DNA from: Tubulanus polymorphus
Taxonomy: Eukaryota > Animalia > Nemertea
Direction of reading: 5' to 3'
Assembly: GCF_964204645.1 (NCBI RefSeq)
Contig: NC_134030.1
Coordinates: 20,544,210 to 20,608,209, forward strand
Length of the DNA: 64,000 nucleotides
Made by a program: the position numbers and the translations under genes. Within the stretch, counting starts at the first letter, position 1. Each line of letters opens with the position of its first letter. The notes below the pieces were generated by a model that saw only the letters and a list, made by a program, of their open reading frames with translations, was not told where the DNA came from and did no database searches. Positions 32,309 through 61,030 of the stretch are shown here, in pieces.

Positions 32309-33935
32309 CTACTGGCAGTCCTTCGAACAAATAGCTGGTTTCTGATTCCGGCATCCAATATCGTTCCACTCACCACTACCTCCATACATTTCAACGCAAC
32401 GTTCGATACTAGAACCACTCGGCTGTCTGGGGGCCCATCTCGTGTAATTCTGCAAACAGGTAATAAAACAACTTCGTGCGGGCTCTCTAAAGGGTGCATT
32501 AGATTTTGAAGGGGTACACGACGGTCGTACCCCTCCGCCTCTGTGTTCGCCAAGATGTTTTTGTGTGTTAAAGACCGGTCACAAGCACGCGTACAGGCCA
32601 GAACAAGAGGCACCCATACACGCTCTTACTTACGTAAACAGTTCATGTAGATTTCGGGACCACACCTTACAGATGACCTTACTGTTCGCTAGATGGCGAA
32701 CTAGTCGAAGGTTGCTACTCTAACTGCACTATGGCATGTAAGATAAAATCCCACTATTTACAGATTAAAAGAATTTAAAAACCAGAATAGACCTGACGAT
32801 GATCTCTAGGGTGAGATCGAAACGTCGTGTCTTTTAAATATTTTAGATTTAATAAATAAATTCTGGTTTTTAAATTCTTTTAATCTGTAAATAGTGGGAT
32901 TTTATCTTATTATCCGTTCACCACGTTTGAGTGTGGTCATCGTTCTACTAGGGCATGCTTTAGAGCTGTCTTACAGTCGTTGAAATGGCCAAACTGATAG
33001 ATTTTTGTGAAATTTTCTTTGCTTTTGGAAAAATTGCCTAAAATTCCCCACATCCCGCCAACTGAAGGGAGGGTCGATCGAAGCTTCGTTGATGTGTACA
33101 TCGATGTTATTCGAGAGAATATTTCTAGAAACGACGAACTTACCGTTGTTAAGGTAAGCGATGGGCGCTGTTTCCAAATACCGAGCCAAACAGACGGCAC
33201 GTCATCGGGTATAAGACCTAAAATGACGACATTATTGTTTAAGTTAAAAAACCATGATCGCCAATCCCCCGTATAAAACGGCATATTCCATACACACTCC
33301 GGGCTACATTATTTTCCTCCAAGCTATCGATTCTGGCTAGTTTCGAAGTCTCACAATGTTGGCGTTGCGGCAAAATTTCCGGAAAAAACTTGAAGCATTT
33401 CGTGTTTCCAGCCGGGGTCCAACCGTCATCACAAACACACGCTAAAACTATATATACATCCATACGACACAACGATTAGTATCTACAATAGGTTAACCGA
33501 AATTTCCCCTTTGATCAACTATATATTTCCTATTTTATTCTATTTCACGCAACCCTGCTTCTATTGGATTTCAGATTTTCTATTGCATAAGATACGTATC
33601 ATAGTTTGCTTTGCTTCAAATAACTTCAGTTTGTAACTTTTCTGAGCCCGAATCTTGTATCAAATCTTATAATTAGATAAGGCTTATATTGTTCTGGTCA
33701 GTTTATCCATTATCTAATATCTCTCGAGTTTTTTTTTCATTATTTCGAGTGCATTGCTCAAAATAATCGTTTTCTGCGCAAGTTTTCAAAGTTGCGACGT
33801 GACAAATGGCAGATAATATCCCAAAAACGCGGTTAAAGCTGCCTGATAGCTATATTAATAAGTGACAACTATAATGGTATATTCACCTGCCGTTGTAGAA
33901 CAGACCAGTAACAGAGTCGATATTATCAGCTTCAT
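32309..33935 (-). CDS. Secreted C-type lectin, copy 1 (A lineage), 135 aa
   Basis: Exons 33935-33887 (MKLIISTLLLVCSTTA), 33441-33298 (ACVCDDGWTPAGNTKCFKFF..), 33217-33144 (SLIPDDVPSVWLGIW..), 32449-32309 (NYTRWAPRQPSGSSIERCVEMYGGSGEWNDIGCRNQKPAICSKDCQ*). Contains WLG, QPS and WND motifs. The exon-2 donor is the weaker gtgtgt. Confidence 0.85.
32739..32946 (+). mobile_element. Penelope-like element with hammerhead core (32793-32826) and 11-bp TSD
   Basis: Same core as 24695. TSD actatggcatg/actagggcatg at 32728-32738 and 32947-32957. Empty site in lectin copy 4 (~45505). Confidence 0.8.
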
Positions 33936-35170
33936 ATTCGACGGGTCAACGTTTTTCTCTTATCTGAAACTAAAGGCATTGATATTTTTAGTAGCTTGCC
34001 TTAAGAAAAATATGTGAAAATATGGGTCTTTTAAAGTTCGGTTTTGCTCCATAAGTTTCGTTTTGCGTTTTCCTATAATCGAGGTCACTCATGTAAGAAT
34101 TATTGCATATCACCCTTATCAGCCACCATACTTATGTGCGTAGCGTACGAACTATAAATATTGATTGTGTCGAGAATCAATCAGGGAACTACGGAAAATC
34201 ATCATGGCAGCGCAATGATAATTTATACTACGGATTTGTTCATACCTCACAGCAAAATCATCCCTATAATATCAGCGTAATTAGCATTTTTTATAAAGTT
34301 ATCTTTTTCTAATTTGTTTTTGCCAAGAAAGAAATCACGAAATTCAATGAAATTTCGATTCTGTATCTAATCTTTTATTTTTCCTTTTTTCGATCGGTTG
34401 CCAGTTAATTCGAAGCTGAAAAATTCGATACCTAGGTTCTGATCTCTGCTGAGATTTTAAGTTGACCCGGCCGACCGCCCATACGTGTTATATCTTAAAC
34501 CGTGTACATTATTTTAAGAAAATATTGATCAAGTTTATTACCATAATAGACCTGGCAGTTATTGGTATGAACTTCTTGCAAATTTTATTGCAGTTTACAA
34601 AATGACCCGGCCGATTAGGAGAAACAAAGTATCATTTTTGATTGCCAAATATTACATTTCTTATTAAATCTAGATTAAAACGAATCGGATAATTGGAAAA
34701 AATGTGTGAAGCTATAATCAAAACATTTCGTTTGCGAAATCGTTTAATCGCCAGTATAACTTAACTTACCCGCCTTGTCAGTAGTTTCACGATATGATAA
34801 ATGATTATTGTTTGTATCATACGCAGGTATGAACGCGCGGTATTAACGATTTTGCATTAAAACATGTGCGCTGAAAGTATATATCGGTGAGGCTTTTTAA
34901 CGACACTTGACTCGTGGATGTGGCCATTTTCGAGAACAGTTTTGATCAATAATTGGTTGTTTTTATACAATCAGTTAGCACGGTTAAAAATGTCACATTT
35001 TCATTTTGCACATAGATGTGTAACAAACATTGCATATATGTACATATACAACGTTCAATTTTGCTCAATTCCCAATCAAAAGCGAATACCAAAACCTTCC
35101 TTAAGCAGAGCTGAAAATCATAAAAGTACTGGAAATTGAGTGAACCCTTTATTCGGGTTTGTCCAGTAAT

Positions 35171-35330
35171 TTATCGGGTCCACTTGAACTTCACATCTTT
35201 ACAGTTCAAAGCATTCAAGGGAGAAACTATTGATGCATAATTTTGAATGAATTTCCTGTAAAAATTTGTCATGCCTAGAAAACTTCGTAATTGTTTGACA
35301 TTGGATGGAACTGGAAAGCTGTTAGCCTCA
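35171..35330 (-). mobile_element. Ty3/Gypsy pol fragment (RT-RNase H connection)
   Basis: FPVPSNVKQLRSFLGMTNFYRKFIQNYASIVSPLNAL..FKWT. Confidence 0.85.
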
Positions 35331-35850: not shown

Positions 35851-38135
35851 CTATTGACAGTCCTTCGAACAAATAGCTCGTTTCGGACTCTGGCATATAA
35901 CATCGTTCCATTTACCATTACCTCGATACATTTCAACACAACGTTCGACAAAAGGACGACCATACAACCATCCGTTTACACTCGGTTGTCCGGAAGCCCA
36001 ATTCCTGAAATCCTGCAAACAGGTAATGAAACTATTTCCTTATGAATCAAACAAGTATAAGTTATATAGATTAATATCTAAGGATAAAACAAGGTCGGAT
36101 CGAGGATTCTATGAAGGGGTGGACCTTGATATTGGAATGGGCATTAACTTTGAAAAGGACAGATTTGGCAGGCTGGGGTGGGTTCTGATGGGTCTCACAC
36201 AGAAGATTTGAGAAATACAATCGTTGTTCTTGGCCTTGATAGGGTCTATTTGGATTTATTTTTAGTCTGCAAAAACCTTTTCCGGGCTTTTTGAAGGGCA
36301 CATTGAACTTTGAAGTGTACCCGGTCGACCCCCTCCGCCTCTGTATACGTCAAGATGTTTTCCTTTGAGTCAAAGAGCAGTTACAAGTACGCGTACCGGC
36401 CAGCCAGAACAAAACGCACCCTTACACACAGTTCAAGTAAAAATTCGATGTAGTCACGTGGGGAGTGACGATGAAATCCTCGAAACAACCTCGAATTTAC
36501 CGTAATGAGGTCAAATGATGAGCCCCGTTTCCAAATACCAAGCCAAACAGACGGCACGTCATCGGGTATTAGACCTAAAATGACGACAGTATTGTTTAAG
36601 TTAAAACATGATCGCCACACCTACATATAAAACAGCATATTCCATCACGTACATACTCTACATTATTTTCCTCCAAGCTATCGATTCTGGCCTGTCCCGA
36701 AGACGCACAATGTTGGCTAGGCGACAAATATCTAGGTGAAAACATGAAGCACTTCGTATTTCCAGCCGGGGTCCAACCGTCATCACAAACACACGCTGTA
36801 ACTATATATACATCCATACGACACAACAATTAGCGATAACTCAAACATCATCAGCAATCCAAAATTTCCCCCTCTTAATTTATAAAACGCACTGATCAAA
36901 ACACCTCTTTCTCTGTTCGAATTCTATACTATAATCACCATCATAAAATATATTTGCTCTTAATTTGTTTAGTTTGTAACGGTTTCCTCACACATATTAC
37001 TAACTATTTCTGGTTGAGTATCAAATCTCATTACTCGTCGTTTTGGTCTCTATATTTATCTCAGAATTCTATTATGAGATTAAGTGTATCAAATCAAGTG
37101 CATCAAATCAAATGTATCAAATCAAGTGTTACAAATCAAATGTATCAAATCAATTTGATTACTATTACGGTAAAGTCGAAACGTCGAATAGAATATTTTA
37201 AATCTTGAAATAGGGATTGGCCCGTTGTTCACTTGATTCGTAGATTTGTTTGGTTTTGTTTTGATTTGGTGAAGCTTACAAACCCACCGGTCGCTCCGCC
37301 AGGAACGAAACAGGGGTTTGATTTTTGAAATCGGAATTCGAAGTACAGATATAGTTGTGTGATCGGCGGTCCAAATTAAAGAATTTTTTGTTTAAATCGA
37401 AGTACATAATTGGGAAATTCGGTCCCAGTTCATTCAAACGATCTTCTAACCAGTCTGAACCGGCAAGCGACTGATTGGGGTCAAATAGGATATCAACGTA
37501 CTCTCTTTGTTTTAAGTGTGGGGTTTTATATCCGGTTCGATAGTAGAATATTAGCGTTATTTGTGTTTCTACTAGTTTACAATCAAAACCAAACCTCAAA
37601 CCGATCAGACAATGTAAGCCTAATTCGCCCGCTTTTTCGGTGGTGAATTCGGGTTCAAACATTGAATTACAACAAAATTGAACTCAAAATGTGTCATTGT
37701 TAGTTCAGTAATCCCCAGACCAGACAACTTGATATCTCAAATTTTAGTTTAGTAGTTATCACCTAAAGTCCAGCGGTCTAAACTGTTTAATATAATTTGA
37801 CATCGAAAATAGTAGTTCAAGCGGCAGTGAAATAGAGTATATATTTCGATGATTTTGGAAAACGTCAGTAATCGAGATGTTAAAAATAGACGAAAATATT
37901 CCCAAATAGTTGTCGTAGATCTGGAACCAATCGCCCATAGTTTCCAAATCAAAAGTAAAAATGCGTAAAATTCCTTACGCTTTTTTTTCACTTTCTCTTT
38001 GCTCCATGGAATACTTTTCAGGAAGTTTTCTAACATAAATGATGGATAGTAATATCAATAAATGACAATTATATTGGTATATTTACCTGCCGTTGTAGAA
38101 CAGACCAGGAACAGAGTCGATATCATCAGCTTCAT
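35851..38135 (-). pseudogene. C-type lectin copy 2 (A lineage), frameshifted
   Basis: Exons 38135-38087, 36795-36657, 36574-36501, 36012-35851. Exon 2 is 139 nt versus 144 nt in all paralogs (5-nt GCTCA deletion before the donor), giving a premature TGA in exon 3. The other exons are intact. Confidence 0.75.
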
Positions 38136-39272
38136 ATTCAAAGAGTCTACCTTTTTCTTATTGAATCTGAAACTGAAGGCATGTACATTTTTAGTAGCCG
38201 TTCTACTTGCTAAAAACAAAACATAGGTCCCTTATGAACTATGAATATTGAAATCATTTATTTCCCAGTATAATTTACTTACTCGTTCTATCAGCGAAAT
38301 TGATATGTAAAATGATTATTATTTAGTATCATATATACGGGCGTGTTGACGATTTTGCACAAAACAGTCGCGCTGAAAACAAACATTGATGAGGATATTC
38401 GGCACTTGATTTGAGTAAATAATATGTGGTAGTTTTCGGGGACAGGTTTAATCAATTATCGGTGGTTGAATGATTATTGTTTAGTGTCCTATATACGGGC
38501 GTGTTGACGATTTTGCATAAAACACGCGCGGTGAAAACACGCATTGGACGTGAGGCTTTTTCGACACTTGACTCGAGGACGCGGCCATTTTCAAGAACAG
38601 TTTTAATCAATAATTGGCTGTTAGCATACAGTCAGTTAGAACGGTTCAAAAGTGCCATTTCCACATAAATATATGGCATTCGTTGCATACGTGTATCTAG
38701 GTAGACGTTCTTCTTTCATGCAATGGGAATTCCATAAAAGAAAACGTTTTCGAAGAAGAAACTCTGTTTTTGTACTGGTAATTTTTACTAAAGAAATCGA
38801 CTTAAGACATTAATGATTCGTACCAAGCGCCGGTTATAATATACCCGCTACTGTGGCAAGTGAGGATCCACCAGGTGACGTCTGTCAGTTACTGTATTTC
38901 TTCTGCAGTTCAATTAAATCCACTTTTAAAACTGAATTGAAAGATTATTTTATTCTACGTAAGATTTCAGAGAACACGTGATGAGATTCGGCACCGATAC
39001 TGTGGCAAGCGAGGATCCACCAGGTGTCGGTAGTGGTTACTCAGTTATTGTACTTCAGTTACTCAGTTACTTCAGTTACTGTACTGTTCTTCTGCATTTC
39101 AGTTCAATTCGAATCGACTTTTCTCATAAGTAAATCATTCGTTTTCAGTAAAATCTATACCATGCACCGATTGAGAAAGGGAATCTTTTATCTATCCGAT
39201 AACTTGTTTGATAATTCTCGGATTTAGAAGCCTAACAACCAAGCCTTAACGTCATGTCATCTTTGTCATTTT

Positions 39273-39438
39273 GTATTGACAGACTATCTATCGAACAATA
39301 GCAGGCTTGTTACCCCGGCAAAACATCGTTTAAAAAACGAACAAAATATTTACCAGTTTTGATACTATTTCAAGGCAAGATTCTTCTGTTGCGGGCATCC
39401 CTGCACTCGTTTCTTGATCGACTCAATTCTGGTAATCC
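39273..39438 (-). pseudogene. Decayed B-type lectin exon 4 downstream of copy 3
   Basis: Homologous to 59231-59386 (DYQN*VDQETS..ESCLEI..). The acceptor AG is lost, and there is a stop codon and indels. Confidence 0.75.
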
Positions 39439-40331
39439 GTGTAACCAATAATGAACGGGCTCACGAGATTCTATCCGTCAGTGCATTATATCATGAAATA
39501 TGGCGGAATGGGGTTTTAGCTTCGCCTTATACTTTCATATTAATTGGTTGATTGGTGTCACGAATTTACAAATGTTCTCATCCGCGCCCCGCACCCACGT
39601 AGGAAAACCCGACAACGAGCTGAGAGCTTTGTAGAAATATCCTGCAATAATCGTCGGTTCAGAAGATTTTATGACTAAAGGCTTTAATTTAATACATATT
39701 CCTTAAGGTTTCATTTTATCATTTCCGTCGATGTGCTTCATGAAATTTGGACTGATTACCATTCACATATAGACGTCTCGTTCAAGGCGATCTCAATATT
39801 CAACACCATCGGGTAAATCTAAAAAGAATCTTGATAGCTTGTCTGATCGTAACCTTAGCGTCGTAAAGATATCCGGCCTGTGATGTATTGCTCGCAAATG
39901 TCACGATTTTCATTTGTAGATAAATAAAGTCGCAGGGAAATCTTTTTGAACGTTGCTTGGGTGGTTTTCTGACGGCTCGCAAAACGTAATAGACATTTTC
40001 TGAAACGTGTTTTTCATCAGCAATCTCTGAGCTCTTGCGACTATCGAGTAAAATTGCCGGTTCGAATCCCGTATAGTTAATGTACCAGTTTCAGGTTAGA
40101 ACGTAAGCGCGCTAGAAAATGCAAATTATGTCTAATCATCCGACTGTGCAAGAACGGAATAAATAACTGAGTGTTCGATTTTCAGAGAATTAATCGTCGA
40201 ACAACTTCAGAAGTCTATCATTGGTCATAAGACGACCTATAACCGCTACAGAATAGTTTTATTTTCGATACCGAACAAAATGTGAATTTGTGATAACATC
40301 GTAGTGAAGATGTTCATCATATCGTTCTCGT

Positions 40332-42984
40332 TCATTGACAGTCCTTCGAACAAATAGCTGGCAGGAAATTGTAGCATAGAACATCGTTCCACTCACCACT
40401 ACCTCCATACATTTCAACGCAATTTTCGTAAACAAAACGACTATTCATCCACCATCGGGTTCTACTCGGCTCTCCGTGAGCCCAATTCCTGAAATTCTAC
40501 AAACAGGTAATAGAATTACTTCCTTATTATTCAAACCGGTATAAGTTATATAGATTGATAAACAAGCACAAACCAAGGTCGGATCGAGGATTCTATGGAG
40601 GGTTGGAACTTGATATTGGAATGGGCACTCAGTTGGAAAAATGGCAGATTTGGCAAGAATGCCGGCACCAAGCCATTAATAGGAGTCATCACTAAATATC
40701 TCGATTTGTTCTATTAAGAAACGCAATCTTATTCTGATAAGTTGACATGCTGAACATGATAACAGAGATAAGAATATATCACTGTTAATTCGATAGAAGA
40801 CATAATGTGAGTTTTATTTAATCTTTGCATGTAGAGCTTAAGCCAAATAAATTTCAAATGTTAAAAAAAATAAAAGACATGAAATGTTTTATTGAAATAT
40901 TTGAAAACATGTATATGTAAGTTGTAGATCGCCGATAAAGTACTATTATCAATTTAATTATAAAATAAATTTATTCTGTTCCTGGGCCGCTGATGATATC
41001 ACATCTTAAGGACTTGAAAATCCATATACTAAACAAAACAAAAATAATGATGGACAACAAACCCAGTGAAAGTTTTTAAGTAGCCGAATAAACTGAGCAG
41101 TCACTTCGTCATTAGAATCAAAGACAATTTGTGTTCTCTCCACTGTATTTGCAGAACCTGGTTTACATTGTATGATCGAGCTTAAATCAAGCTTAATCAG
41201 CTTCTTTATCCGTCACACACAAATCGTCAGTAAATTCCAAGATTTCAAGACCGACTGGCGATAACAATAAGCCTCTGTAAGCGTCCGTTCGTTTTCTAAT
41301 CGTTTGTCTGTTATTAGAGGAAGAATATGTTGTAGAGCTATTCGAATATGCACAAGTCATACGTAAGTTAGTTTTAAGTCAAGTTAGTTTCCCGGATGAT
41401 ATGGTTCCCAGTTCAACATGTTTCATTCTAATAAATATTTCAGAGAATCGACACCGAATCATTAACAACCCGAGGTTTAAAGAGAACGCAGTTCTACAAG
41501 ACTCGAGAACAGATGTCAACATGACTTGAAGGACTGAACTACGGTTTTAGATTTAAAAATCGAGTCGCCTGTCTCGTTACCGGCAGGAGGCTTGTGTGAC
41601 AAAGTTTGTAAGGAAAATACTAATAATTACCATATAACAATGAATCAAATAATCTAGATGGGCAGTCGTTCTTTTTAAGTTGTAATTTTTAAAAGTGGGT
41701 CAAAGCACGCGTACAAACCGTCAGAACGAACGGGCGACAAGACATACCATGAACGTACACGAATGTTTCGTGATTTTGAATACGGATGAAGTCATTATGT
41801 AGAAGTAGATCGGGCTGATCGTGAGAATTATTGCTACAATGAAGAAATTACCGATTGAAAGTTGAACGTCGAATACCCGGGGCTGGCATAATCCCTGAAT
41901 CCCAGGTAGGCGGAATCCGCATAAGCAGGTATCAGACCTGAAAACGATAACAGTATTATATCAGTTCAATATCTCACCCCCCCCCCCCATAAAACACGGT
42001 ACATGACATATTTCGGCATACATACTCTCAGCCACGTTATTCTCTTCAACGCTATCTACCATGGCCAGTCTGGAAGCGATGCAATGTTGATCTGGTCGGA
42101 GATATAACGAAGAAAGCTTGAAGCATTTCGTGTTTCCGGCTTTTGTCCAACCGCCTTCGCAAACACACGCTGAAACTATATCCAACGATTATCAAATTCT
42201 ATCGGATCATTTGCATGCGGTCTACACGGGTTAATAAGCCTAATATGGAGCGATGTGGCCGAGTTGTTTGAGCGTTCGCTCTGGAAAGCCAGTGAAGTCA
42301 TGTGAAGTAGTGTCCATAGGCGATACACTTTTCCTCATTTCCTCTTTCCATCCAGGAGTGAATAGGTACCTGGCCTGATAGATGACTCCTGAGCGCCTAG
42401 TAGCTGATCGGATTTAACTTCTCCCCAGGGAGAGATGATTGATACACGGAATAGAGTTATAGGCTGACGGTAATAATGCTGGAAAGTTAAGCGCTCTGAG
42501 CAGCTCCGTTGGATTAAGTGCTTTACGAGACAAATATTTACTTTGGATAGCAATAATGCTAATACAAACGACAAATTATCTTTCATTCTACCGTTTTATT
42601 TCCCGTTAAGTCACATCCTTTTTCTATCATTCATATCATTTCTTTTTCTTTTTCTAGATTCGATTAATTAGCTTGATATTTGTGAAGTTTTGGTTCGGAA
42701 AAATGGACGATCTTAATAAATTTGAAACAGTCGCACAGCCTGAAACATTTGCTTTTTCTGCAAAGCTTACTGCACACAGTTTTTCATTAACTTTAAACCG
42801 GTGAATATTTTCTACAATGGAACAGGTGCTATACACTTTTCAAAATTAATTTATTTGATTCTAACTCATATTTACTATCCATAGTTTGCTTAGCTTTATT
42901 TATTTGTGGCAATTCATATTGATATATTATTTTACCTGCCGTTGTAGAACAGACCAATAACAGTGTTGATATTATCAGCTTCAT
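40332..42984 (-). CDS. Secreted C-type lectin, copy 3 (B-lineage exons 1-3 plus A-type exon 4)
   Basis: Exons 42984-42936, 42169-42026, 41937-41852 (SLIPAYADSAYLGFRDY..), 40496-40332 (NFRNWAHGEPSRTRWW..CVEMYGGSGEWNDVLC..AICSKDCQ*). Frame is intact. Confidence 0.87.
42246..42545 (+). mobile_element. tRNA-derived SINE in intron 1 of B-lineage lectins (also 50393-51350 split, 60312-60600)
   Basis: A-box-like tggccgagt head, ggcaagacacttatcctcattgcctctttccacccaggagtaaa body, and aagcgctctgagcag..agcgctt tail. Confidence 0.7.
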
Positions 42985-44897: not shown

Positions 44898-46502
44898 CTA
44901 TTGACAGTCCTTCGAACAAATAGCTCGTTTCGGACTCTGGCATATAACATCGTTCCATTTACCACTACCTCGATACATTTCAACGCAACGTTCGAAAAAA
45001 CGAAGACCATACAACCATCCGACTCCACTCGGCTGTCCGGTAGCCCAATTCCTGAAATCCTGCAAACAGATACAAAAAACTTCCTTATGAATCAAACCAG
45101 TATAAGTTATATTAATATCTATGGATAAAACAAGGTCGGATCGAGGATTCTATGAGGGGATGGAATTTGATATTGGAATGGACATTAACTTCGAAAAGGA
45201 CCGATTTGGCAATGCGGGCTGCGAGCGAAGCATTGGGGTGGGTAATGCATCTCCCACGGATGATTAAAAATGGTCCATTTGGATTTATTGTTAGTCTTTT
45301 CTTAAATTTCCCAATGCAAAAAAATCTAATAACACATAAAAACCATCTTGTATACGTCAGGATGTTTCCTTTGTTTCAAAGAGCGGTCTAGCGCACGCGT
45401 GAAGGCCAGAACTAAAGGCAACATACACGCGCTTACGAGCAAAGCTGAGCTACTTAATTTTCCGCTAGATGGCGAACTAGTCGAAGGTTGCTGCTCTAAT
45501 GCATTATGGAATGCTTTAGAGCTGTCTTACAGTCGCTGAAATGCCCAAACACGGATAGTTGGCGAAAAAGATGTTTGAAAAATTTTCTTTTCTTTTGGAA
45601 AATCCCCCACATCTCGAGAAAATCAACTCTTTCGTTGGTGAATAAAAAATCATTTTTATTCACCAACGAAAGAGTTGATTGAAGCTACTTTGATATATAG
45701 AATCACGGTACATATAGGACAATGTTATTCGAGAGAATATTCCTAGAAACGACGAACTTACCGTAGTGAGGTCAAATGATGAGCCCCGTTTCCAAATACC
45801 AAGCCAAACAGACGAAACGTCATCGGGTATTAGACCTAAAATGACGACAGTATCGTTTAAGCTAAAACATGATCGCCACTCCTCTGCATAAAACAGCATA
45901 GTCCATCACGTACATACTCTGAGCTACGTTATTTTCCTCCAAGCTATCGATTCTGGCTAGTTTCGAAGACGAACAATGTTGGCTTTGCGGCGAAATTTCC
46001 GGAAAAAACTTTAAGCATTTCGTGTTTCCAGCCGGGGTCCAACCGTCATCACAAACACACGCTGTAACTATATATACATCCATACGACACAACGATTAGC
46101 GATGACTCAAACATCATCAGCAATCCAAAATTTCCCCCTCTTAATTTATAAAACGCACTGATCAAAACACCTCTTTCTCTGTTCGAATTCTATACAATAA
46201 TCACCATCATAAAAGACAATTGCTTTTAATTTGTTTAGTTTGTAACGGTTCCTTGCCGCCTAGTACTAACTATTCATAGCAGTCGTAGATCTGGATCCAA
46301 TCGACTTTCGTTTCTCAATCAGACAAAATCCATTAAATTCCACACACTTTTTTCGTTTAAGAGCTTTGCCCAATGAAATAGATTTCAGGAAGTTTTCTAA
46401 CATAAATGATGGATAGTAATATCAATAAGTGACAATTATATTGGTATACTTACCTGCCGTTGTAGAACAGACCAGGAACAGAGTCGATATCATCAGCTTC
46501 AT
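44898..46502 (-). CDS. Secreted C-type lectin, copy 4 (A lineage)
   Basis: Exons 46502-46454, 46061-45918, 45835-45762, 45059-44898 (DFRNWATGQPSGVGWLYG..CVEMYRGSGKWNDVICQSPKRAICSKDCQ*). Frame is intact. Confidence 0.88.
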
Positions 46503-47639: not shown

Positions 47640-47806
47640 GTATTGACAGACTATCTATCGAACAATAGCCGGCTTGTTACCCCGGCAAAACATCGTTTAA
47701 AAAACGAACAGAATATTTACCAGTTTTGATACTATTTCAAGGCAAGATTCTTCTGTTGCGGGCATCCCTGCACTCGTTTCTTGATCGACTCAATTCTGGT
47801 AATCCG
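47640..47806 (-). pseudogene. Decayed B-type lectin exon 4 downstream of copy 5
   Basis: Near-identical to 39273-39438. Confidence 0.75.
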
Positions 47807-48663: not shown

Positions 48664-51600
48664 TCATTGACAGTCCTTCGAACAAATAGCTGGCCGGAAA
48701 TTGTAGCACAGAACATCGTTCCACTTACCACTACCTCCATACATTTCAACGCATTTTTCGTAAACAAAAAGACTATTTATCGACCATTTGGTTCTACTCG
48801 GCTGTCCGGTAGCCCAATTCCTGAAATTCTGCAGACAGGCAATAGAATAACTTCCTTATTAATCAAACCGGTATAAGTTATATAGATTGATATACAAGCT
48901 ACAACCAAGGTCGGATCGAGGATTCTTTTGAGGGTTGGAACTAGAACTTGATATTGGAATGGGCACTAATTTGGAAAAATGGCAGATTTGGCAAGAATGC
49001 CGGCACCAAGCCATTAATAGGAGTCATCACTAAATATCTCGATTTGTTCTATTAAGAAACTCAATCTCATTCTGAGACGTGCTGAACATGATAACAGAGA
49101 TAAGAATATATCACTGTTAATTCGATAGAAGACATAATGTGAGTTTTATTTAATCTTTGCATGTAGAGCTTAAGCCAAATAAATTTCAAATGTTAGAAAA
49201 AAAAATAAAAGACATAAAACGTTTTATTGAAATATTTGAAAACATGTATATGTAAGTTGTAGATCGCCGATGAAGTACTATTATCAATAAATTAATAATT
49301 TGATTTATTCCGCTCCTGGGCCGCTGTTGATATAAGTTAAGTTAGTTTCCGACTCAGTTCCACAGTTGCGAGTTAGAGTTAACTCTGAGTTAAAGTTAGT
49401 TCATTTTCAATGAGTTAACTCAGAGTTAAATCTTAACTGGGAACTGTGGAACTGGACCCCGGATGATGGGGTTTTGAAATAACTGTTCGAAACTAAACGT
49501 TTCTACAAATCTACTGTGGGTTTTTTTATTTCTAACACTGAGATTCATATCAGTTCACTATAGTCAACATGTTTCATTCTAATCAATATTTCAGAGAATC
49601 GGCATCGAATCATTAAAAACCCGAGGGTTAAAGAGAACGCAGTTCTACAAGACTCGAGAACAGATGTCAACATGACTTGAAGGACTGAACTACGGTTTTA
49701 GATTTAAAAATCGAGTCGCCTGTCTCGTTACCGGCAGGAGGTTTGTGTGGCGAGTTTGTAAGGAAAATACTAATAATTACCATATAACAATGAATCAAAT
49801 AATCTAGATGGGCATAGTCGTTCTTTTTAAGTTGTAAATTTTCAAAGTGGGTCAAAGCACGCGTACAAATCGTCAGAACGAACGGGCGACAAGACATACC
49901 ATGAACGTACACGAATGTTTCGTGATTTTGAATACGGATGAAGTCATTATGTAGAAGTAGATCTGGCTGATCGTGAGAATTATTGCTACAATGAAGAAAT
50001 TACCGATTGAAAGTTGAACGTCGAATACCCGGGGCTGGCATAATCCCTGAATCCGAGGTAGGCGGAATCCGCATGAACCATCAGACCTGAAAACGATAAC
50101 AGTATTATATCAGTTCAATAACTCTCCCGATAAAACACGCACGGCACATGGCATATTTCAGCATACATACTCTGAGCCACATTATTCTCTTCAACGCTAT
50201 CTACCATGGCCAGTCTGGAAAACATGCAATGTTGATCTTGCCGGCCATATTCCATAAAAAGCTTGAAGCATTTTGAGTTTCCGGCTTTCGTCCAACCGGC
50301 TTCACAAACACACGCTGAAACTATATCCAACTATTATCAAATTCTATCAGATCATTTGCATGCGGTTCTACACGGTCTATAAGCCTATACTATGGAGCGA
50401 TGTGGCCGAGTTGTTTGAGCGTTCGCTCTGGAAGCCGGGTCATGTGAAGTAGTGTCCCATAGGCGATACACTTATCCTCATTTCCTCTCTCCACCCAGGA
50501 AGAAAGACACTAAATATTTGGATGGATATATGAAAGCTGTGGGTACTGGAGTGTGTAATGGGTAGTGTAGTGTGATCTGTGTGCATTTGTGACCAGCACA
50601 CAGATCACATTGTTCATTGGGGTTTGGTCCAGGACTCACGAGATTTTCAACAACACGGAAGTAACGTGTAATAAATGATGACTTGAATTGCATGACTACC
50701 TACCACCCGTCATTATTGTTGGAAAACTAAACGTTCCGCACTGACTAAAAATTAGTAATAACATTGTAGAAATGGCCAGAATTTTAACTTAGGTTCTATC
50801 TCATTTTTATTTTACAATTGCGATTGGTATAATTTTTTTTTAAACGTCCGTTAAGGCTTCATGTTTCGTCTGTTCTTCACTGCAAATAGTTACGCAACTA
50901 CGCACATTTCAGTGTTTTTGGCAGCTGTACACTCAATCGGCACCGTTCGTGACTACCTTCACTGCGGAATTATCATTAATTAACATCGCCATATCACATC
51001 ATCAACTTATATTGTGCCTTAAAACCCTAACAGCCGAAATAATTGAAATGCACACACGATTTCTATCATTGAAAATTGAGAGAGTGGCCGTGTTTGTGTT
51101 CTGCTGCTTCGCGTAAATCCCGCGCGGTTGCGCAACCGCGCGGAGTGGGGCCGATACGTCCAGGAGTAAATAGGTACCTGGTCTGATAGATGTCTCCCGA
51201 GCGTCTAGCAGCTGCTCGGATGTTACCTCTCCCCAGGGAGAGATGACTGATACATGGAATGGAGTTATAGGCTGGGAATAACAATGCTGGAAAGTTAGGC
51301 GCTCTGAGCAGCTTCGCTGGATTTAGCGCTTTATAAGTCAAAATGTTTACTTAGGCTAACAATAATGCTAACACATATTAAACGACAATCTTTGTCTTTC
51401 AATCTACTGTTTTATTTCCCGTTAATTCATGTCCTTTCTTCTACAATTCATACTATTTATTTTTCTTTTTACAGATTCGATAAATTAGCTTAATATTTGT
51501 GAACATGGGTCGGAAAAATTTACGATAAATTCAAAAACAGTCGCACAGCCTGAAACATTTGCTTTTTCTGCAAAGCTTACTGCACACAGTTTTTCATTAA

Positions 51601-51797
51601 CTTTGAGGGACTGGTGAACCTTTTCTACAATGGAACAGGCGCTTTACACTTTTCAAAATTGATTTATTCGATTCTAACTCATATTTACTATCCATAGTTT
51701 GCTTAGCTTTATTCATTTGTGGCAATTCATATTGATATATTATTTTACCTGCCGTTGTAGAACAGACCAATAACAGAGTTGATATTATCAGCATCAT
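48664..51797 (-). CDS. Secreted C-type lectin, copy 5 (B-lineage exons 1-3 plus A-type exon 4)
   Basis: Exons 51797-51749, 50314-50171, 50086-50004, 48828-48664 (NFRNWATGQPSRTKWS..GKWNDVLC..). Frame is intact. Confidence 0.87.
49353..49460. mobile_element. Short palindromic MITE (relatives at ~56535-56672 and ~13190-13238)
   Basis: cagttccacagtt..aactgtggaactg inverted termini; absent from the duplicated segment at ~41390. Confidence 0.6.
50499..51163. mobile_element. Unclassified ~660-bp TIR-less element inserted at CCAG (copy 2)
   Basis: Interrupts the SINE in intron 1 of lectin copy 5. Empty sites are visible at ~42352 and ~60409. Confidence 0.85.
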
Positions 51798-51934
51798 TTT
51801 CGACGAGTCAACTTCTTCTTTTATCTATAACACTGATAACGTATACAGATATTGAAAGATTTATTAAGCCTATTATGGGAAGTGCATGGTCCTTGCATAT
51901 TTGCTGAGTTGAGAATCAACCAGGGAATTACACA

Positions 51935-54562: not shown

Positions 54563-56920
54563 TTATTGACAATCCTTCGAACAAATAGCTGGTTTCATAT
54601 TGAGGCATATAACATCGTTCCATTTACCACTACCTCGATACATTTCAACGCAACGTTCGATCATACGATAACGGCCCTTCCATCCGGTTACACTCGGCTC
54701 TCCGGAAGCCCAATTCCTGAAATCCTGCAAACAGGTAATGAAACAACTTCCTTATGATTGAAATCTGAAGGGGTGGACCTTGATATTGGAATGGACACTC
54801 AATTTGAAAAAGGCTAGACTTAGCAGCGTGGGGTGCGAGCGAAACATTGGTAGGAGTTCTGGTGGCCGGTCTCCAACTGAAAATCTATCAAGACAAACAG
54901 TCGTTGTTCTTGGCATTAATAGGGACTATTTGGATTAATTTTTAGTCTTTTTTAAATTCCCTTTGCAAAAAGTCTTTTCCTGTCTTATTCAAGGGTGCAT
55001 TCAAATTTTGAAGGAATGGAGCCGGCCCTCGAATACGTCTAGATGTTTTCCCTCGTGTCAACGAGCGGTCGCAAGCACGCCAGCCAGAACAAAAGGCACC
55101 CATTGACAGTTGATGTGACTGACTTACTGCCTTCATTGTCCGCTAGATGGCGAGCTAGTCGAAGGTGGCTGCACTAACTGTACTATGGCATGATTTGAAG
55201 CCGTCTTACAGTCGTTGAAATAAAGCAATAACTGCCCTAACACGATAGATCGAGGAACTTTTTGAAACATTTTCTTTCGCCAAAAATCCCCCATATCTCG
55301 AGCAAATTAGGTTCTCTATTCGTCGACGAAAGGGTTGATCGAAGCTTCTTTGATGTGTATTTTAACGGTACATGGTCATATAGGGCAATGTTATTCCTAC
55401 AAACGACGAATTTACCGTAGTGAAGTCAAATGATGTGGCCCGTTTCCTAAATCCAAGCCAAACAGACGGCACGTCATCGGGTATTAGACCTAAAATGACG
55501 ACAGTATTGTGTAAGTTAAACCATGGTCGCCTCTCCCCGTACGAAACAGCATATCAGGCGCGGATCCAGGATTTTTTCCAGGATGGGGTTCATAAAAATG
55601 TTAATCTTAAACTGCCGACCAAAATTTCTAATGATAGGGGGCCTATACGGCATAATATTGTTTGGCCGAACATATAAGATGATATGGTACCGATTATGTG
55701 GTACTGTTCGCCCGCTTTGTCTTGGGTACATTCCTTAAAACGATTAAAAATTTCGATTAAAACGATTAAAAATGTTTTTGGTAGCCTGCATATTTCGACG
55801 TGTACATACTCTGAGCTACATCATTTTCCTCCAAGCTATCGATTTTGGCCAGTGCCGAAGACGAACAATGGAGGCGGCTCAGCGAATTTCCCGGAGAAAA
55901 CATTAAGCATTTCGTGTTTCCAGCCGGGCTCCAACCGTCATCACAAACACACGCTGAAACTAGATGAGTCGAAAAAGTATACACTATCATCCGCGTAAGA
56001 TGGACGACGACATAAAAGTCGCGCACTGATTCAGTCAACACTATCAGCCACCATCAGTACGCCTGATGATGGCTAATAGTATTTAGCCGAAACGTTGCTA
56101 AAAAAAAGTCTCATCTATTCAAGAATTTTTCATTTTCATCTTTGACTGAATCATTGTGAGATTTCTCTCGTCAAGCTCACACTGCATTCATAACGACGCA
56201 ACGATTACCAATGACTCAAAAATCATCAGCAATCCAAAATGTCCCGCTCTCATCCACTATTCCCTCCTCTTTGTTTCAAATGCACTCATCTAAAAGACCC
56301 CTTTTTCCGTTTAAATGTTAATCAATAAGGCCACGCAAAGAGTTACCCTTGTATCACATCAGCCCCTGTGACGAGAACGGCACGTAATCATTTTTATTTC
56401 CCTTTTTGTAAAAAAAAAGATAGAGGAAGTTTTATTCCAAGTTCCAAAAGTTATGAGGGCGACTTTTTAAATTTTTTAAATGGCGAAATTTTGGCGATAG
56501 TGACCGCGAAGAAAACATTAAAAAGTGTAACCAGTTGGCCAGTTGCACGGTCGTGACTTAAGTCCCAAAGTGGTCTTATCTGAAAACTGGTTTTAAGTTG
56601 TTAGATTGGCTTTAGAACTAAGATGGCCTTAGACTTGTCTTGAATCTAAGCCATGACTATGCAACCGGTCCCAGGTGATTAAGACCAAAACCCCAATCAA
56701 AAGACAAAATTCATTAAATTCCTAATGCCTTTTTTTTTCATTTGAGAGCTTTGCTCAATGAAATGTTTTTCAGGAAGTTTTCAAACATAAATGACGGATT
56801 GTATCCCTAAAACGCCGTTATCTCTGCCTGACGGTTTTATCAATAAGTGCCAATTATATTGGTAAATTTACCTGCCGTTGTAGAACAGACCAGAAACAAA
56901 GTCGATAGTATCAGCTTCAT
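54563..56920 (-). CDS. Secreted C-type lectin, copy 6 (A lineage)
   Basis: Exons 56920-56872, 55953-55810, 55489-55416, 54724-54563 (DFRNWASGEPSVTGWKGRYRMIERCVEMYRGSGKWNDVIC..). Frame is intact. Introns 1 and 2 carry insertions. Confidence 0.85.
55962..56192 (+). mobile_element. Second Penelope-like family with hammerhead core (56063-56096)
   Basis: CTGATGA-tGGCTAAtagtatTTAGCC-GAAA-c-GTT, preceded by a partial inverted copy (ctatcagccaccatcag). Absent from the paralogous introns. Confidence 0.65.
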
Positions 56921-58517
56921 ATTCGACGAGATTTTATCTTATGTATTCTGAAACTGAAGGCATGGACATTTTTAGTAGACTTAAAAACATTGTTAACAAA
57001 AATATATATGAAAAATATAGGTATTATGGCTGTATTATGTGCGAACAATGAATATTGAGACGATAATCAATCCGGGAGCTACCGAAAATCATCGTGATAA
57101 TTACAAATTTTGTCCATATCTCACAAAGCTCCCACATATAGTTAATTAGCATTTTTTGAGAGACAGTCGCGCGCATGGATTTGGAATTAATCTAACGATA
57201 TATGATTCATTGCAAGTGCTAGCTTTTAAATAAGGTATCCTCGGGACGAAGTTATCTTTCTTTCTAATTTGCTGAAATAAATCACAAAATCAAATTTCGA
57301 TTCTCTATCTAATCTTTTGTTGTTGTTTTTTTTTCGACCGGCGGCCAGTTATATCCGACTATCTATCGCGAAATTAAAAGCTAAAATAGCTAGCACCTAG
57401 TTTCTAATTTCTGCCTAGTGTTTTAAGTTGACCCGGCCTATACATGTGTCAGAACCGTAGCTAACCATAACAGTTATCGATATGAACTACTTGCAAATTT
57501 TATTGCGGCTTAGAAAATGACCCGGCCGATCGGGAGAAACAAGGTATCATTTTTAGCCAAATACATTTTTCATTAAATTTTGATTATAACGAATCAGATT
57601 CAAATTATATTCAAAAACTTTTTGTTTGTAAAATCCTTTAATCCCCAGTATAACTTAACTTACCCTTTCGGTCAGCAGTTTCACCATATGTTAAATGATT
57701 ATTGTTTTCGTATCATATATACAGGCTTGGTAACGATTTCGCATAAAAAAAACATGTGCACTGAAAGCAAATATCGGTGAGGAGGCTTTTTCGGTACTTG
57801 ATTCGAGCAAATACGCGCTAATTTCCAAGAACAGTTCAGTTAGTTAGAATAGTTCAAAAATGCCATTTCCGCGTACCGTGGCAGATTCGATTTTACACTT
57901 AACGTTCGATAAACTATTTTCCAACCAAAAACGAATATCAAAGCCTTCCATAAAAAGAGCTGAAAAATAAGGCAAGTACTGGAAATTGAGCGAATGAATT
58001 CTTCAAATGGGGTCTGGTAACAGGAAGCACCCCTATTCTTCTTTATTCAGGTTTGTCCAGTAATTTCTCGCTATATAATCTGGCCCCAAAACAGGCAAAT
58101 GTAGCACATATTCTACAAATTCGGATTTCATACGAATTTACCGCGTCTAGTTCAGCGGCGGTCTTTTTCGACTAACAGATCATGACCACGACATAAAAAT
58201 GGAGTTAAATGGGTCGAATTAAACTATAGTGATAAGGTACATATTGTGTAAACCAATGTCCCGATCACAGAGTTAAGCAATTTATTTTGAATAATCAAAT
58301 TAATAGGCTTTTTTTTATCAGTACATCTTTCGTTGAAAATGCACCCCTTGCGGCTCCCTTTTTTCGTAATTTTTTCTTTAATACGCTTTATATTCTTCTG
58401 TTATGCAATAAGGATTTCATTTAAAAGAAAACGTTTCTGGTGAAGAAACTCTGATTTTGTATTTTACCGCTACTTTTTACTGAAGAAATTGACTTAAGCG
58501 CCGGTTATAATATATCC

Positions 58518-59070
58518 GCTACTGTGACAAGCGAGGATCCACCAGGTGTCGGTAGTGGTTTACTCAGTTACCGTACTTCAATTTCTTCTGCAGTTCAACT
58601 AAATCCACTTTAAAAACTAAATTCAAAAATTGTTTCATTCTACGCAAGATTTCAGAGAACACGTGGTGAGATTTGGCACCGTTACTGTGGCATGCGAGGA
58701 TCCACCAGGTGTCGGTAGTGGTTACTCGGTTACTGTGCTTCAATTTCTTCTGAAGTTCAACTAAATCCACTTTCTAAACTGAATTCAAAAATTGTTTCAT
58801 TTTACGTTATATTTCGGAGAACACGTGGTGAGATTCGGCACCGTTACTGTGGCAAGCGAAGATCCACCAGGTGTCGGTAGCGGTTACTCAGTTACTGTAC
58901 TTCAATTTCTTCTGAAGTTCAAATAAATCCACTTTCAAAACTGAATTGAAATATTGTTTCATTCTAAGTAAGATTTCAGAGAACACGTGGTGAGATTCGG
59001 CACCGTTACTCTGGCAAGCGAGGATCCACCAGGTGTCGGTAGTGGTAATTCTGTTACTGTATATCAATTT
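58518..59070. repeat. ~162-bp tandem repeat, ~3.4 units (shorter versions at 38848-39060 and 47216-47430)
   Basis: g(a)ggatccaccaggtgtcggtag at 58533, 58696, 58858 and 59020. Confidence 0.92.
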
Positions 59071-59230
59071 CTTCTACGTTTCAATTGATATCGAATCAAC
59101 TTTTATTCTAAGTAAATCAATTTTCAATGAGAAGGCGAATCTTTTATCTATTCGATGAGTTGATCGATAGTTTTCAGATTTAGAAGCCTAAAAACCAAGT
59201 CTAAACGTCATGTCATTCTTGTATAATTCT

Positions 59231-61030
59231 TTATTGACAGTTCTTCGAACAAATAGCCGGCTTATAATCCCAGCAATTTACATCGTTCCATTTACCAGAC
59301 GTCTGATAGATTTCAAGGCAAGGTTCTTTGTCTGGAGGGTCTCCGCCGACATCGCTTGGTTCGTTATTGGCCCAATTGTGGTATCCCTGAAACCAGTAAT
59401 GAACGGGACTTGAATGAAAGAATCAAATCATAATACATTACAAACTACACAGTTGTTTAATGGAGGTCGCTTTTACGGACTGGTATTAATTCAAGCACTG
59501 TGGTTAGGCCGGCCTAGCTCGGGTCATTAACAACCCGAGGGTAAAAGATAACACAACTCAGCCCCAAGAACATGTCAAGATATCACCCATTGTGTTATTG
59601 GCTTCGAGGACTGCATAACTACAATTTTAGATTTTGAAAATCGAGTCCCCCGTTTCGTTTGGCAGGTGCTTGTAAGAAAAAAACACCGACAATAGGCATA
59701 TAACAATGAATCAAATAATCTAGATGGGCAAGGCTTCATTTTTAGTTGTAAATTTTCAAAGTGGGTCAAAGCACGCGTAAAAACCGTCAGAAAGAACTGG
59801 CAAAAAGACACACCATGAACGTACAAAAATATTTTGTGACTTTTTATACGCATGAAGTCATTATCTAAGACTACGTAGGTCTGGCTGAGAACTATCGCTA
59901 CAATTACGAAATTACCGATGGAAATGTGAACTTCGAAAATCCCATCTGATCAGGATCCGTAAACCCGAGATAAGCGGAATGCACAGAAGACGGTATTAGA
60001 CCTGAAAATGATAACAGAATTGTATCAGTTCAACTAATATCACCCCCCCCCCCTCTCCCCGATAAAACACGGCATATTTCAGCATACATACTCTGAGCCA
60101 CATTATTCTCTTCAACGCTCTCTACCATGGCCAGTCTGGATGAGCTGCAATGTTGGTGTTGTGAGAGAGATCCCGAAGAAAATATGAAGCATTTCGTGTT
60201 TCCGGCTTTTGTCCAACCGGCTTCGCAAACACACGCTGAAACTATATCCAACGAATCATCAAATTCTATCAGATCATTTGCATGCGGTCTATACGGGTTG
60301 ATAAGCCTACTATGGAGCGATGTGGCCGAGTCGCTTGAGCAGAAGTCGGGTCGACATGTGAAGTTGTAGTGTTTAGGCAAGACACTTATCCTCATTGCCT
60401 CTTTCCACCCAGGAGTAAACAGGTACCTGGCCTGATAGATGACTCATGAGCGCTTAGTAGCTGGTCGGATTTTACTTCTCTACAGGGAGAGATGACTGAT
60501 ATACGGAATGAGTTTTTAGGCTGGGGACGATAATGCTAGAAAGTTAAGCGCTCTGAGCAGCTACGCTGGATTTAGCGCTTCATTAGACAAATGTTTATAA
60601 TGGCTAACAATAATGCTAACACATATCAAACGTTTTCAATCTACCGTTTTATTTCCCGTTAATTCCTCTCTCTATCATTTCTATTATTTCTTTTTCTTTT
60701 TTTAGATATTTGTGAAACTGTTTCGATTCGGAAATATTCATGATCTGAATAAATTCGACCACAGTTGGAAACATTTTGCTTTTCTGCAAAGCTTACTGGA
60801 CTGTGGATACAGTTTTTCATTTTAGTATAAAGTACTCTGGTGAACATTTTCTACAATGGAACAGGCGCTATACAAATTTCGAGATTGAATTATTGATTTA
60901 TTAGATTCTAACTCATATTTATTCCCCTTAGTTTGCTTAGCTTTATTCATTTGTGACAATTTATATTGGTATATTATTTACCTGCCGTTGTAGAACAGAT
61001 CAGAAACAAAGTCGATATCATCAGCTTCAT
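59231..61030 (-). CDS. Secreted C-type lectin, copy 7 (pure B lineage)
   Basis: Exons 61030-60982, 60235-60092, 60001-59916, 59386-59231 (GYHNWANNEPSDVGGDPPDKEPCLEIYQTSGKWNDVNCWDYKPAICSKNCQ*). Frame is intact. Confidence 0.87.

Follow-up and report, generated by a model that had tools for sequence, protein, structure and literature searches.

A 64,000-nucleotide stretch of the genome of the ribbon worm Tubulanus polymorphus (hereafter, the window) contains, on its minus strand between positions 32309 and 61030, a tandem array of seven co-oriented four-exon genes that encode predicted products of 135-147 aa, each consisting of a signal peptide and a single C-type lectin domain (CTLD). The array accounts for seven members of a larger family, which numbers about 20 genes and is confined almost entirely to one chromosome. 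On balance, we are inclined to regard these genes as a family of small secreted long-form CTLD proteins that is restricted to the species or its lineage, expanded in tandem, and has a putative role in glycan recognition. As an expansion of invertebrate lectins, the array is of a normal kind, with the variety raised by the swapping of pieces between copies, and leaves the knowledge of invertebrate lectin families unchanged. Ribbon worms are poorly studied, and toxin research currently takes an interest in their mucus and proboscis secretions, for which lectin-like transcripts are listed without genomic analysis; the locus described here provides a clean, compact example of the apparent construction of a secreted lectin repertoire by duplication, selection on a few segments, conversion and terminal-exon replacement.

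The genes were delineated by tblastn search of exon peptides against the window and by DNA alignment of the exon regions (Table 1). The ends originally proposed for the array coincide exactly with the stop codon of gene 1 (32309) and the ATG of gene 7 (61030). In the explicit models, the four exons are 49, 144-147, 74-86, and 141-165 nt long; all 21 introns are bounded by GT..AG, the intron phases are identical across the seven genes, and the reading frames are open. Intron 2 of gene 6 is enlarged, to 320 nt. Gene 7 corresponds to the NCBI protein P0001, identical to our model save for two extra residues that come from an acceptor located 6 nt upstream; this in-frame alternative acceptor of exon 2 is present in all seven genes. 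For genes 1-6, no annotated protein was found in the public collection queried with ORFs spanning exon 2 and with the whole P0001 sequence, where longer or fused annotations could still exist. Because only one of the seven genes was found in the public protein collection, models of the other six are supplied here; these joined models were built from the window coordinates and used for alignment and counting, and the database searches were run with exon references or database proteins. In gene 2, 5 nt are deleted at the conserved donor of exon 2, and the frame is kept only via a weaker donor 8 nt downstream; with the conserved GTATGT donor, a frameshift leads to a stop five codons into exon 3. 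Thus, gene 2 may be a broken copy. The stretch is contained in three sequencing runs, all of them DNA, with contigs that span introns and intergenic DNA and show no joint at which an intron is skipped.

Table 1. Genes and relic exons in the window (all on the minus strand except for the last row)
Feature	Span (strand)	Exons 1 to 4	Subtype	Product (aa)	Tripeptide	Remarks
Gene 1	32309..33935 (-)	33887-33935, 33298-33441, 33144-33217, 32309-32449	A	135	QPS	post-QPS loop of 4 aa only
Gene 2	35851..38135 (-)	38087-38135, 36649-36795, 36501-36574, 35851-36012	A	143		with cryptic donor
Gene 3	40332..42984 (-)	42936-42984, 42026-42169, 41852-41937, 40332-40496		147	EPS	
Gene 4	44898..46502 (-)	46454-46502, 45918-46061, 45762-45835, 44898-45059	A	142	QPS	
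Gene 5	48664..51797 (-)	51749-51797, 50171-50314, 50004-50086, 48664-48828		146	QPS	
Gene 6	54563..56920 (-)	56872-56920, 55810-55953, 55416-55489, 54563-54724	A	142	EPS	
Gene 7	59231..61030 (-)	60982-61030, 60092-60235, 59916-60001, 59231-59386	B	144-146	EPS	acidic, proline-rich loop
Decayed original exon 4 of gene 3	39366..39459 (-)		B			stop codons, WND lost
Decayed original exon 4 of gene 5	47733..47801 (-)		B			like the relic downstream of gene 3
Lone exon-4 relic	10431..11266 (+)		A			opposite strand; tblastn matches 10431-10574, 11231-11266; also in genome search

The original prediction posited seven paralogs that share a fixed scaffold, and the motifs GW..AGN.KC, EEN, WND and AICSK.CQ, the E/Q-P-S tripeptide and eight Cys in the mature part were all located, as were the quoted strings, namely, the seven ‘loop 1’ sequences and the post-EPS loops. 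Conservation is indeed highest in the signal exon, with a mean pairwise nucleotide identity of 92%, compared to 64-76% in exons 2-4. In a comparison with the Pfam Lectin_C profile (PF00059; cut-off of 22.6 bits), P0001 scored 42.1 bits (E=1.6e-10), P0029 scored 47.9 bits, and the exon-4 peptides of genes 2, 3, and 7 alone produced 25-28.7 bits. An AlphaFold2 model of P0001 built with an alignment reached a pLDDT of 85.2 and a pTM of 0.78 (pLDDT of 34 when folded without an alignment), and the top Foldseek matches to this model were the CRDs of MGL, CD23, SP-D, SRCL, ASGR, and lithostathine (probability 1.00, TM 0.6-0.75); the predicted fold of gene 7, the gene on which the fold was tested, is that of a CTLD. 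In all seven genes, Cys residues occupy the KC, HC, E-x-C, WND..C, and AIC positions along with one N-terminal position. The four core cysteines (C1-C4) and the long-form pair (C0-C0') are present, with WLGI or YLGF at the WIGL position, and presumably pair into disulfides. Exon 1 encodes M-K-L followed by a hydrophobic run and small residues (S-T-T-A), and inspection by eye reveals no later hydrophobic stretch in the 135-147 aa, suggestive of secretion. The gene models, the Lectin_C match, and the fold, then, support the original assignment of the array to single-domain C-type lectins, predicted to be secreted.

Searching the genome for exon 4 yielded 23 matches. Chromosome C6 carries 22 of them and C12 the remaining one; additional matches, on C8 and C12, are partial. 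Intact four-exon models could be constructed for at least 18 copies, including two pairs of identical, recent duplicates. The copies near 18.04 and 18.24 Mb (L010 and L011) gave no automatic model and may be frameshifted. In a search of 1.84 billion representatives, the combination of the signal peptide and the AICSK-C tail that characterizes the family recurred in only two proteins, both from T. polymorphus (40-44% identity); the rest of the output consisted of one short match at 40% identity and of multi-domain lectins or similarly distant sequences.

Within the window, the genes fall into two subtypes, A (genes 1, 2, 4, and 6) and B (genes 3, 5, and 7), with mosaics between them. By the three-way site pattern, gene 4 is a mosaic of gene 1-like and gene 2-like tracts, and the exon-wise identities show that genes 3 and 5 combine B-type exons 1-3 with an A-like exon 4, their own last exons lying decayed downstream (Table 1). 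The relic region of gene 3 can be aligned with exon 4 and the 3' flank of gene 7 (38845-39459 vs 58841-59407, 71% identity). The lone A-type relic contains a stop codon, and an insertion of about 660 bp interrupts it. Genes 3 and 5 are 98-100% identical in the distal flanks, 87% in exon 2, and 93% in exon 4. A faster divergence of exons than of introns holds, however, in comparison with the distal flanks only: the exons are roughly matched in divergence by introns 1 and 2 and by the 3' end of intron 3, so that mosaic ancestry is a better reading than pure acceleration. The introns were compared through local HSPs and sliding windows, given that insertions make global alignments of whole introns unreliable.

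The variable positions are non-randomly distributed along the protein: they are clustered (lag-1 autocorrelation of 0.38, p=2e-4), and the entropy is higher outside the modeled secondary structure (p=0.003). There are three variable regions: the beta1-alpha1 segment, the long-loop region on either side of E/QPS, and the beta4-beta5 loop, which adjoins WND. The latter two make up the canonical ligand-binding face, onto which most of the variation maps. The most variable segment, beta1-alpha1, is the one originally described as loop 1. Judging from the structure model, it is not a plain loop but rather the end of strand beta1 with a shortened helix alpha1. The alpha1 position is not known to contribute to the classic sugar site; the strongest variation would then lie away from that site, which counts against the glycan-recognition reading. 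Much of the hypervariability originally proposed stems from two old subtypes and from gene conversion or exon replacement among the copies rather than from hypermutation.

Across seven independent sister pairs, dN/dS was 1.89 in the beta1-alpha1 segment, a partition taken from the original prediction, 1.33 in the long loop and the beta4-beta5 loop, and 0.57 in the rest of the protein (p=0.011). For the pooled variable segments, the ratio was 1.55 (p=0.03; p=0.002 for heterogeneity against the rest), with the caveat that pairwise dN/dS rests on assumptions that gene conversion violates and that the p-values for a ratio >1 are marginal; the four sister pairs located beyond the window gave a beta1-alpha1 ratio of only about 1.25. 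By these estimates, the scaffold is under purifying selection; for the variable segments, they are suggestive, although not proof, of positive selection. The ratio for the entire mature protein, 0.99, also fits relaxed constraint. Under this alternative, which we consider rather unlikely, the array evolves by neutral birth and death: young tandem duplicates drift, several of them are silent or are becoming pseudogenes, and the loops are simply the parts that tolerate change. Apart from the overall ratio and the marginal tests, such drift is compatible with the donor-site deletion in gene 2, with the relic exons, which attest to decay in the array, with the six genes for which no annotated protein was found, possibly indicating weak or no expression, and with the return of DNA runs only by the run search. 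It is at odds with the low ratio in the scaffold, the nonsynonymous enrichment in the variable segments, the retention of the four-exon open frame in at least 18 members of the family, and the preservation in the array of seven open frames, the eight Cys, and the Ca2+-site residues despite 20-50% amino-acid divergence.

The preferred scenario, a tandem-expanded lectin family, would involve growth by tandem duplication on one T. polymorphus chromosome. A recent duplication appears to have affected a B-A unit of two genes and about 8.4 kb (genes 3-2 and genes 5-4); genes 7 and 6 follow the same B-A order, and gene 1 would be one extra A gene. Purifying selection holds the scaffold (8 Cys, GW..AG..KC, EEN, (W/Y)LG, E-x-C, WND..C.....AICS), and differences between copies arise in three ways: through substitutions and indels focused in the three variable regions named above; through the shuttling of such segments among copies by short gene-conversion tracts; and through replacement of the whole terminal exon. 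A bolder interpretation, which can be entertained only tentatively, is that of a germline ‘cassette’ system, in which binding segments moved by conversion tracts and exon replacement onto a fixed signal exon and scaffold would generate a combinatorial lectin repertoire for defense or predation, with beta1-alpha1, the surface that diversifies most, as a second, non-canonical face for binding or oligomerization. Given the shared intron phases and orientation, read-through splicing between neighbors could then add further combinations.

For the family seen as putative glycan-recognition proteins, the residues of the binding site are of particular relevance. The WND motif is invariant, as is the Glu that precedes the second core Cys, and with EPS or QPS in all seven genes, the only change among the ligands of Ca2+ site 2 is the replacement of the Asn of EPN by Ser; the paralogs elsewhere in the genome mostly contain EPN. 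In the alignment with SP-D, EPS, Glu, and WND fall on the Ca2+/sugar ligands. The Ser replacement could abolish sugar binding; nevertheless, EPS/WND and QPS/WND lectins have been reported to bind sugars, and site 2 with this replacement occurs in functional invertebrate lectins whose sugar binding is weak or broad (PMC4223726, PMC12842671). Aalb_CTL1 of Aedes albopictus, MmCTL5 of Meretrix, and MeML of Mytilus resemble the array proteins in size (about 150 aa), in the combination of a signal peptide with one lectin domain, and in the presence of Ser in place of the EPN Asn along with a retained WND; among these, Aalb_CTL1 is a Ca2+-dependent hemagglutinin, and MmCTL5 is a weak binder of several sugars (PMC4223726, PMC12842671). 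No close sequence relationship between these proteins and the array was seen, and the array differs by one additional pair of cysteines, located at the extreme N and C termini, and by a shortened alpha1 region. We suggest that the array products are soluble, recognize glycans in a Ca2+-dependent manner, and differ from one another in fine specificity; they would most probably be released into mucus or body fluid and be involved in defense or in the binding of particles or microbes.

It appears improbable that these proteins are instead toxin or mucus effectors of the proboscis or epidermis that act on prey or predators, perhaps through protein or membrane binding as in the case of snake-venom C-type lectin-like proteins. 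In the array, the signal exon is conserved while the mature part changes quickly, a pattern typical of gene families for venoms and antimicrobials; furthermore, EPN is degraded to E/QPS, and the post-E/QPS loops of genes 2-6 are aromatic and basic (2-4 aromatic residues, net charge of +1 to +3). Putative nemertean toxins also repeatedly include C-type lectin-like transcripts (PMC7460313, PMC11768458, PMC10674772). This reading is countered by the full conservation of the WND and Glu ligands, by the even number of Cys, with no sign of an interchain disulfide, and by sequence comparison, in which no characterized toxin was matched beyond the generic lectin domain. Snaclecs of snake venoms resemble the array in employing the lectin fold as a fast-evolving secreted scaffold, but they have lost the Ca2+/sugar site and form loop-swapped, disulfide-linked heterodimers. 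A snaclec identity was rejected: the array largely retains the site (apart from Asn to Ser), has eight Cys, and displays nothing that would point to loop swapping. Gamete-recognition or other reproductive proteins that evolve rapidly under sexual conflict are a highly improbable identity, favored by the general rapid change in a secreted lectin and nothing else, without specific support; some 20 paralogs in at least two subtypes would be unusual among such genes.

Among known proteins, the best-matching solved structure in the fold search is the collectin CRD of lung surfactant protein D (SP-D; 32-33% identity over about 130 aligned residues), and the NCBI name of the gene 7 protein is ‘surfactant protein D-like’. 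The array protein is not a collectin, because it lacks the collagen region and the trimerizing neck, the 146 aa of the gene 7 protein comprising the signal peptide and the CTLD only; conversely, the array has the long-form N-terminal hairpin that is missing in collectins. At the level of family organization, close parallels are the expanded, hypervariable lectin families of other invertebrates, such as the prawn Rlec C-type lectins (PMC7536079) and the bivalve C-type lectin expansions (PMC12842671), which, like the array, are tandem multigene families with a fixed scaffold, variable binding loops, and exchange of loop segments between copies. The array products are predicted to be free secreted domains rather than receptors. 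Rlecs vary by coding tandem repeats, whereas the array varies by substitutions, loop indels, short conversion tracts, and terminal-exon replacement.

The array of seven C-type lectin genes that the original prediction placed in this window is real. Searches of ORF peptides against the window produced seven matches for each exon peptide, all on the minus strand, with the signal exon invariably followed by exon 2, (exon 3) and exon 4, and DNA alignments of the exon regions revealed splice sites conserved among the copies. Each of the seven explicit models (g1–g7, in window order) consists of four exons (49, 144–147, 74–86 and 141–165 nt) with common intron phases 1, 1 and 0; GT..AG borders are found in 21 of the 21 introns, the open frames encode products of 135–147 aa, and the stop codons are followed by conserved AATAAA signals. 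The alignment recovered every claimed motif, the eight mature cysteines, all seven “loop 1” strings and each of the long loops quoted; the signal exon is 92% identical at the nucleotide level among the seven genes, compared with 64–76% for the other exons. This is a well-defined tandem lectin array of a kind already familiar from invertebrates. When only the exon part of the g7 exon-2 ORF was scored, one protein was retrieved, P0001 (146 aa; [quoted passage not shown] at NCBI), which equals the g7 model plus two residues, owing to the use of an in-frame acceptor 6 nt upstream; a second AG is found upstream at exon 2 in all seven genes, which leaves two residues of doubt as to where the mature protein begins. 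No proteins of fitting length were found for g1–g6, which are unannotated as far as the searched protein collection shows. Gene 2 has lost 5 nt immediately 5' of the conserved exon-2 GTATGT donor, and splicing from this donor would break the frame and lead to a stop after five codons of exon 3; the frame could be regained, with one added codon, from a weaker donor 8 nt downstream. A run search returned three runs, all of them DNA, and their contigs match the assembly in this region.

The lectin identity of the array withstood the Pfam check: P0001 scored 42 bits against Lectin_C (cut-off 22.6), and the exon-4 peptides alone also exceeded the cut-off. A structural model of P0001, built with an alignment (A2) of P0001, paralog exon pieces and database lectins (pLDDT 85, pTM 0.78), resembles the solved lectin domains of MGL, CD23, SP-D, SRCL and ASGR (TM 0.6–0.75); it contains the long-form hairpin, strands beta1–beta5 and helix alpha2, with a single helical turn at the usual place of alpha1. 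In the sequence alignment with SP-D, E-P-S falls on E321-P-N323, the pre-Cys Glu on E329 and WND on N341/D342. P0001 was rejected as a collectin, being devoid of a collagen region or neck, and its NCBI name reflects similarity and does not assign it to a family.

The mature protein was partitioned by the secondary structure of this model. Instead of being scattered uniformly, the variable columns form clusters (lag-1 autocorrelation 0.38, p = 2e-4) and enriched outside the modelled helices and strands (column entropy 0.97 vs 0.58 within; p = 0.003), and the entropy hot spots are the segments originally singled out, loop 1 and exon 3 with the long loop, together with the beta4-beta5 loop. The further claim that these are ligand-binding loops held in part: by the SP-D alignment, the two long-loop segments and the beta4-beta5 segment surround the Ca2+/sugar site, whereas loop 1 presumably lies outside these surroundings. 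Judging from the aligned sequences, the ligand-binding face appears to hold most of the variation.

Selection was gauged with Nei-Gojobori counts pooled from three sister pairs of the window and four from elsewhere, all seven being phylogenetically independent. The dN/dS ratio is 0.99 for the whole mature protein, 1.89 for the beta1-alpha1 segment (p = 0.046) and 1.33 for the long loop plus beta4-beta5 (not significant); the variable segments together reach 1.55 (p = 0.03), compared with 0.57 for the rest of the protein (p = 0.011), and nonsynonymous changes exceed synonymous ones significantly more in the variable segments than in the remainder (p = 0.002). These ratios show a scaffold under constraint and variable segments that change at the neutral rate or faster. 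The main evolutionary rival is neutral drift with partial decay of the copies. Positive selection on the variable segments is only suggested by these counts, because the beta1-alpha1 partition was taken over from the very hypothesis being tested, the four outside pairs give it a ratio of about 1.25, and gene conversion disturbs pairwise estimates.

The array comprises A-type (g1, g2, g4, g6) and B-type (g3, g5, g7) genes. The g3-g2 unit recurs about 8.4 kb away as g5-g4, a duplicate with 94% identity over 3.1 kb; g7-g6 has the same B-A order, its B gene being about 77% identical to g3. Along the g3/g5 pair, identity reaches 98–100% in most of intron 3 and in the roughly 1.6 kb that follow exon 4; exon 4 itself stands at 93%, exon 2 at 87%, and introns 1 and 2 at about 85%; hence, the claim that exons diverge faster than non-coding sequence stands against the flank and most of intron 3 but not against introns 1 and 2. 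In g4, exon 2 matches g1 at 94% identity and g2 at 82%, whereas exons 1, 3 and 4 match g2 at 94–100% and g1 at 80–96%. The three-way site pattern is g2-like in intron 1, g1-like through the loop-1-coding part of exon 2, then g2-like once more across intron 2 and exon 3, and finally g1-like in intron 3; these mosaic segments are short conversion or recombination tracts. In g3 and g5, exons 1–3 are B-type (exon 2 is 83–87% identical to g7), and exon 4 matches the A genes at 75–79% identity but g7 at only 56–58%; the original B-type exon 4 persists as a relic about 870 nt downstream of the exon in current use, which bears out the proposed replacement of the terminal exon. The g4 tracts and the g3/g5 replacement make exchange of segments and exons between paralogs a demonstrated source of diversity, and such exchange contributes to the variation of the array. 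A lone A-type exon 4 with an in-frame stop, interrupted by some 660 bp of inserted DNA and without other lectin exons nearby, lies on the opposite strand.

Of the 23 exon-4 matches from six-frame genome searches, chromosome C6 carries 22; P0031, a longer relative (357 aa), was matched only in the whole-protein search and joins the lectin domain type of the array with EGF-like modules, so that this domain also serves in a larger mosaic protein. Eleven copies outside the window could be modelled on the four-exon plan and keep their frames open. They include two identical gene pairs of recent origin, L004/L006 and L005/L007, with about 34.3 kb between the members of a pair; this identity indicates that the second cluster underwent segmental duplication very recently. 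Canonical EPN is found in most outside-window models, including L013 (P0029), and EPS or QPS in the window genes and a few others; in L013, the N-terminal hairpin has been duplicated internally, as a second, partial exon-2 module. Among 1.84 billion representative proteins, the family signal peptide and AICSK-C tail occur in only two others, both from T. polymorphus (40–44% identity); one further match is short (40%), and the rest are multi-domain lectins or similarly distant relatives.

By sequence, the Ca2+-site-2 ligands are intact in the array except for Asn replaced by Ser. In this replacement, with WND kept, the array proteins are like a mosquito EPS/WND lectin, a Ca2+-dependent haemagglutinin (PMC4223726), and bivalve QPS/WND lectins, which bind several sugars weakly (PMC12842671); another QPS/WND lectin is listed for Mytilus edulis (PMC12842671). 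The loops following E/QPS comprise 11–12 residues in g2–g6 (2–4 aromatic, net charge +1 to +3), are acidic and proline-rich in g7, and are nearly deleted in g1, where an in-frame deletion left four residues; with such differences, differing ligand preferences among the seven proteins are plausible. The chief rival on the functional side is that the proteins act as toxins or effectors, given that lists of putative nemertean toxins routinely include lectin-like transcripts (PMC7460313, PMC11768458, PMC10674772); most likely, the array provides a repertoire of soluble, secreted recognition proteins that serve in defence or in mucus.

Locations of the array, its variable segments, family copies and neighbouring features
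Feature	Location	Remarks
Window	C6:20,544,210-20,608,209	assembly of 268 Mb
Seven-gene array	32309-61030 (-)	exactly from g1 stop to g7 ATG
Variable segment, loop 1	P0001 35-51	beta1 end and alpha1 remnant
Variable segments, long-loop region	P0001 80-97, 106-116	before and after E/QPS; exon 3 and exon 4 start
Variable segment, beta4-beta5 loop	P0001 133-137	after WND..C
Decayed B-type exon-4 relics	39366-39459 (g3), 47733-47801 (g5)	align with g7 exon 4 and flank; stop codons, WND lost
Lone A-type exon 4	10431-11266 (+)	insertion from 10574 to 11231
Family copies	window	seven genes and one relic
P0029 gene (L013), “E-selectin-like” at NCBI	C6 20.624-20.633 Mb	about 20 kb past window end; exon 2 partly duplicated
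Lone exon 4	C6 20.45 Mb	
Two copies	C6 18.04 and 18.24 Mb	
Seven copies	C6 19.55-19.64 Mb	
L004/L005 vs L006/L007	C6 19.595-19.611 vs 19.6295-19.6455 Mb	
Three copies	C6 22.47 Mb	
One copy	C12	
P0031 gene (L015)	C8 10.82 Mb	
14-nt satellite, unit CTTGATTTGATACA	61241-61464, 43571-43756, 37082-37153	few hundred bases upstream of B-type g7 and g3; also g2 intron 1
Repeat ORFs similar to the satellite	about 52250-52390	upstream of g5
162-nt tandem repeat	58516-59075 and 38845-39063	3.5 copies, 90% matches, directly downstream of g7; also downstream of g3 relic exon
Very high-copy repeats	32698-33095, 37275-37473, 34489-34687	g1 intron 3, g2 intron 1, between genes; word depth, summed over contigs, as high as 100,000 in DNA runs
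ORFs resembling retroelement fragments	15607-17195 (+)	integrase-like and reverse-transcriptase-like
Long ORF	6805-7764 (-)	GC up to 46%
ORFs resembling immunoglobulin-like domain exons	26008-29422 (-)	

Repeats and further open frames accompany the lectin genes in the window. The long minus-strand ORF consists of a degenerate coding-like tandem repeat (..GVYSTGTACIQPGRRVFNRD..), and the ORFs resembling immunoglobulin-like domain exons, upstream of the array, may be part of a neighbouring gene.
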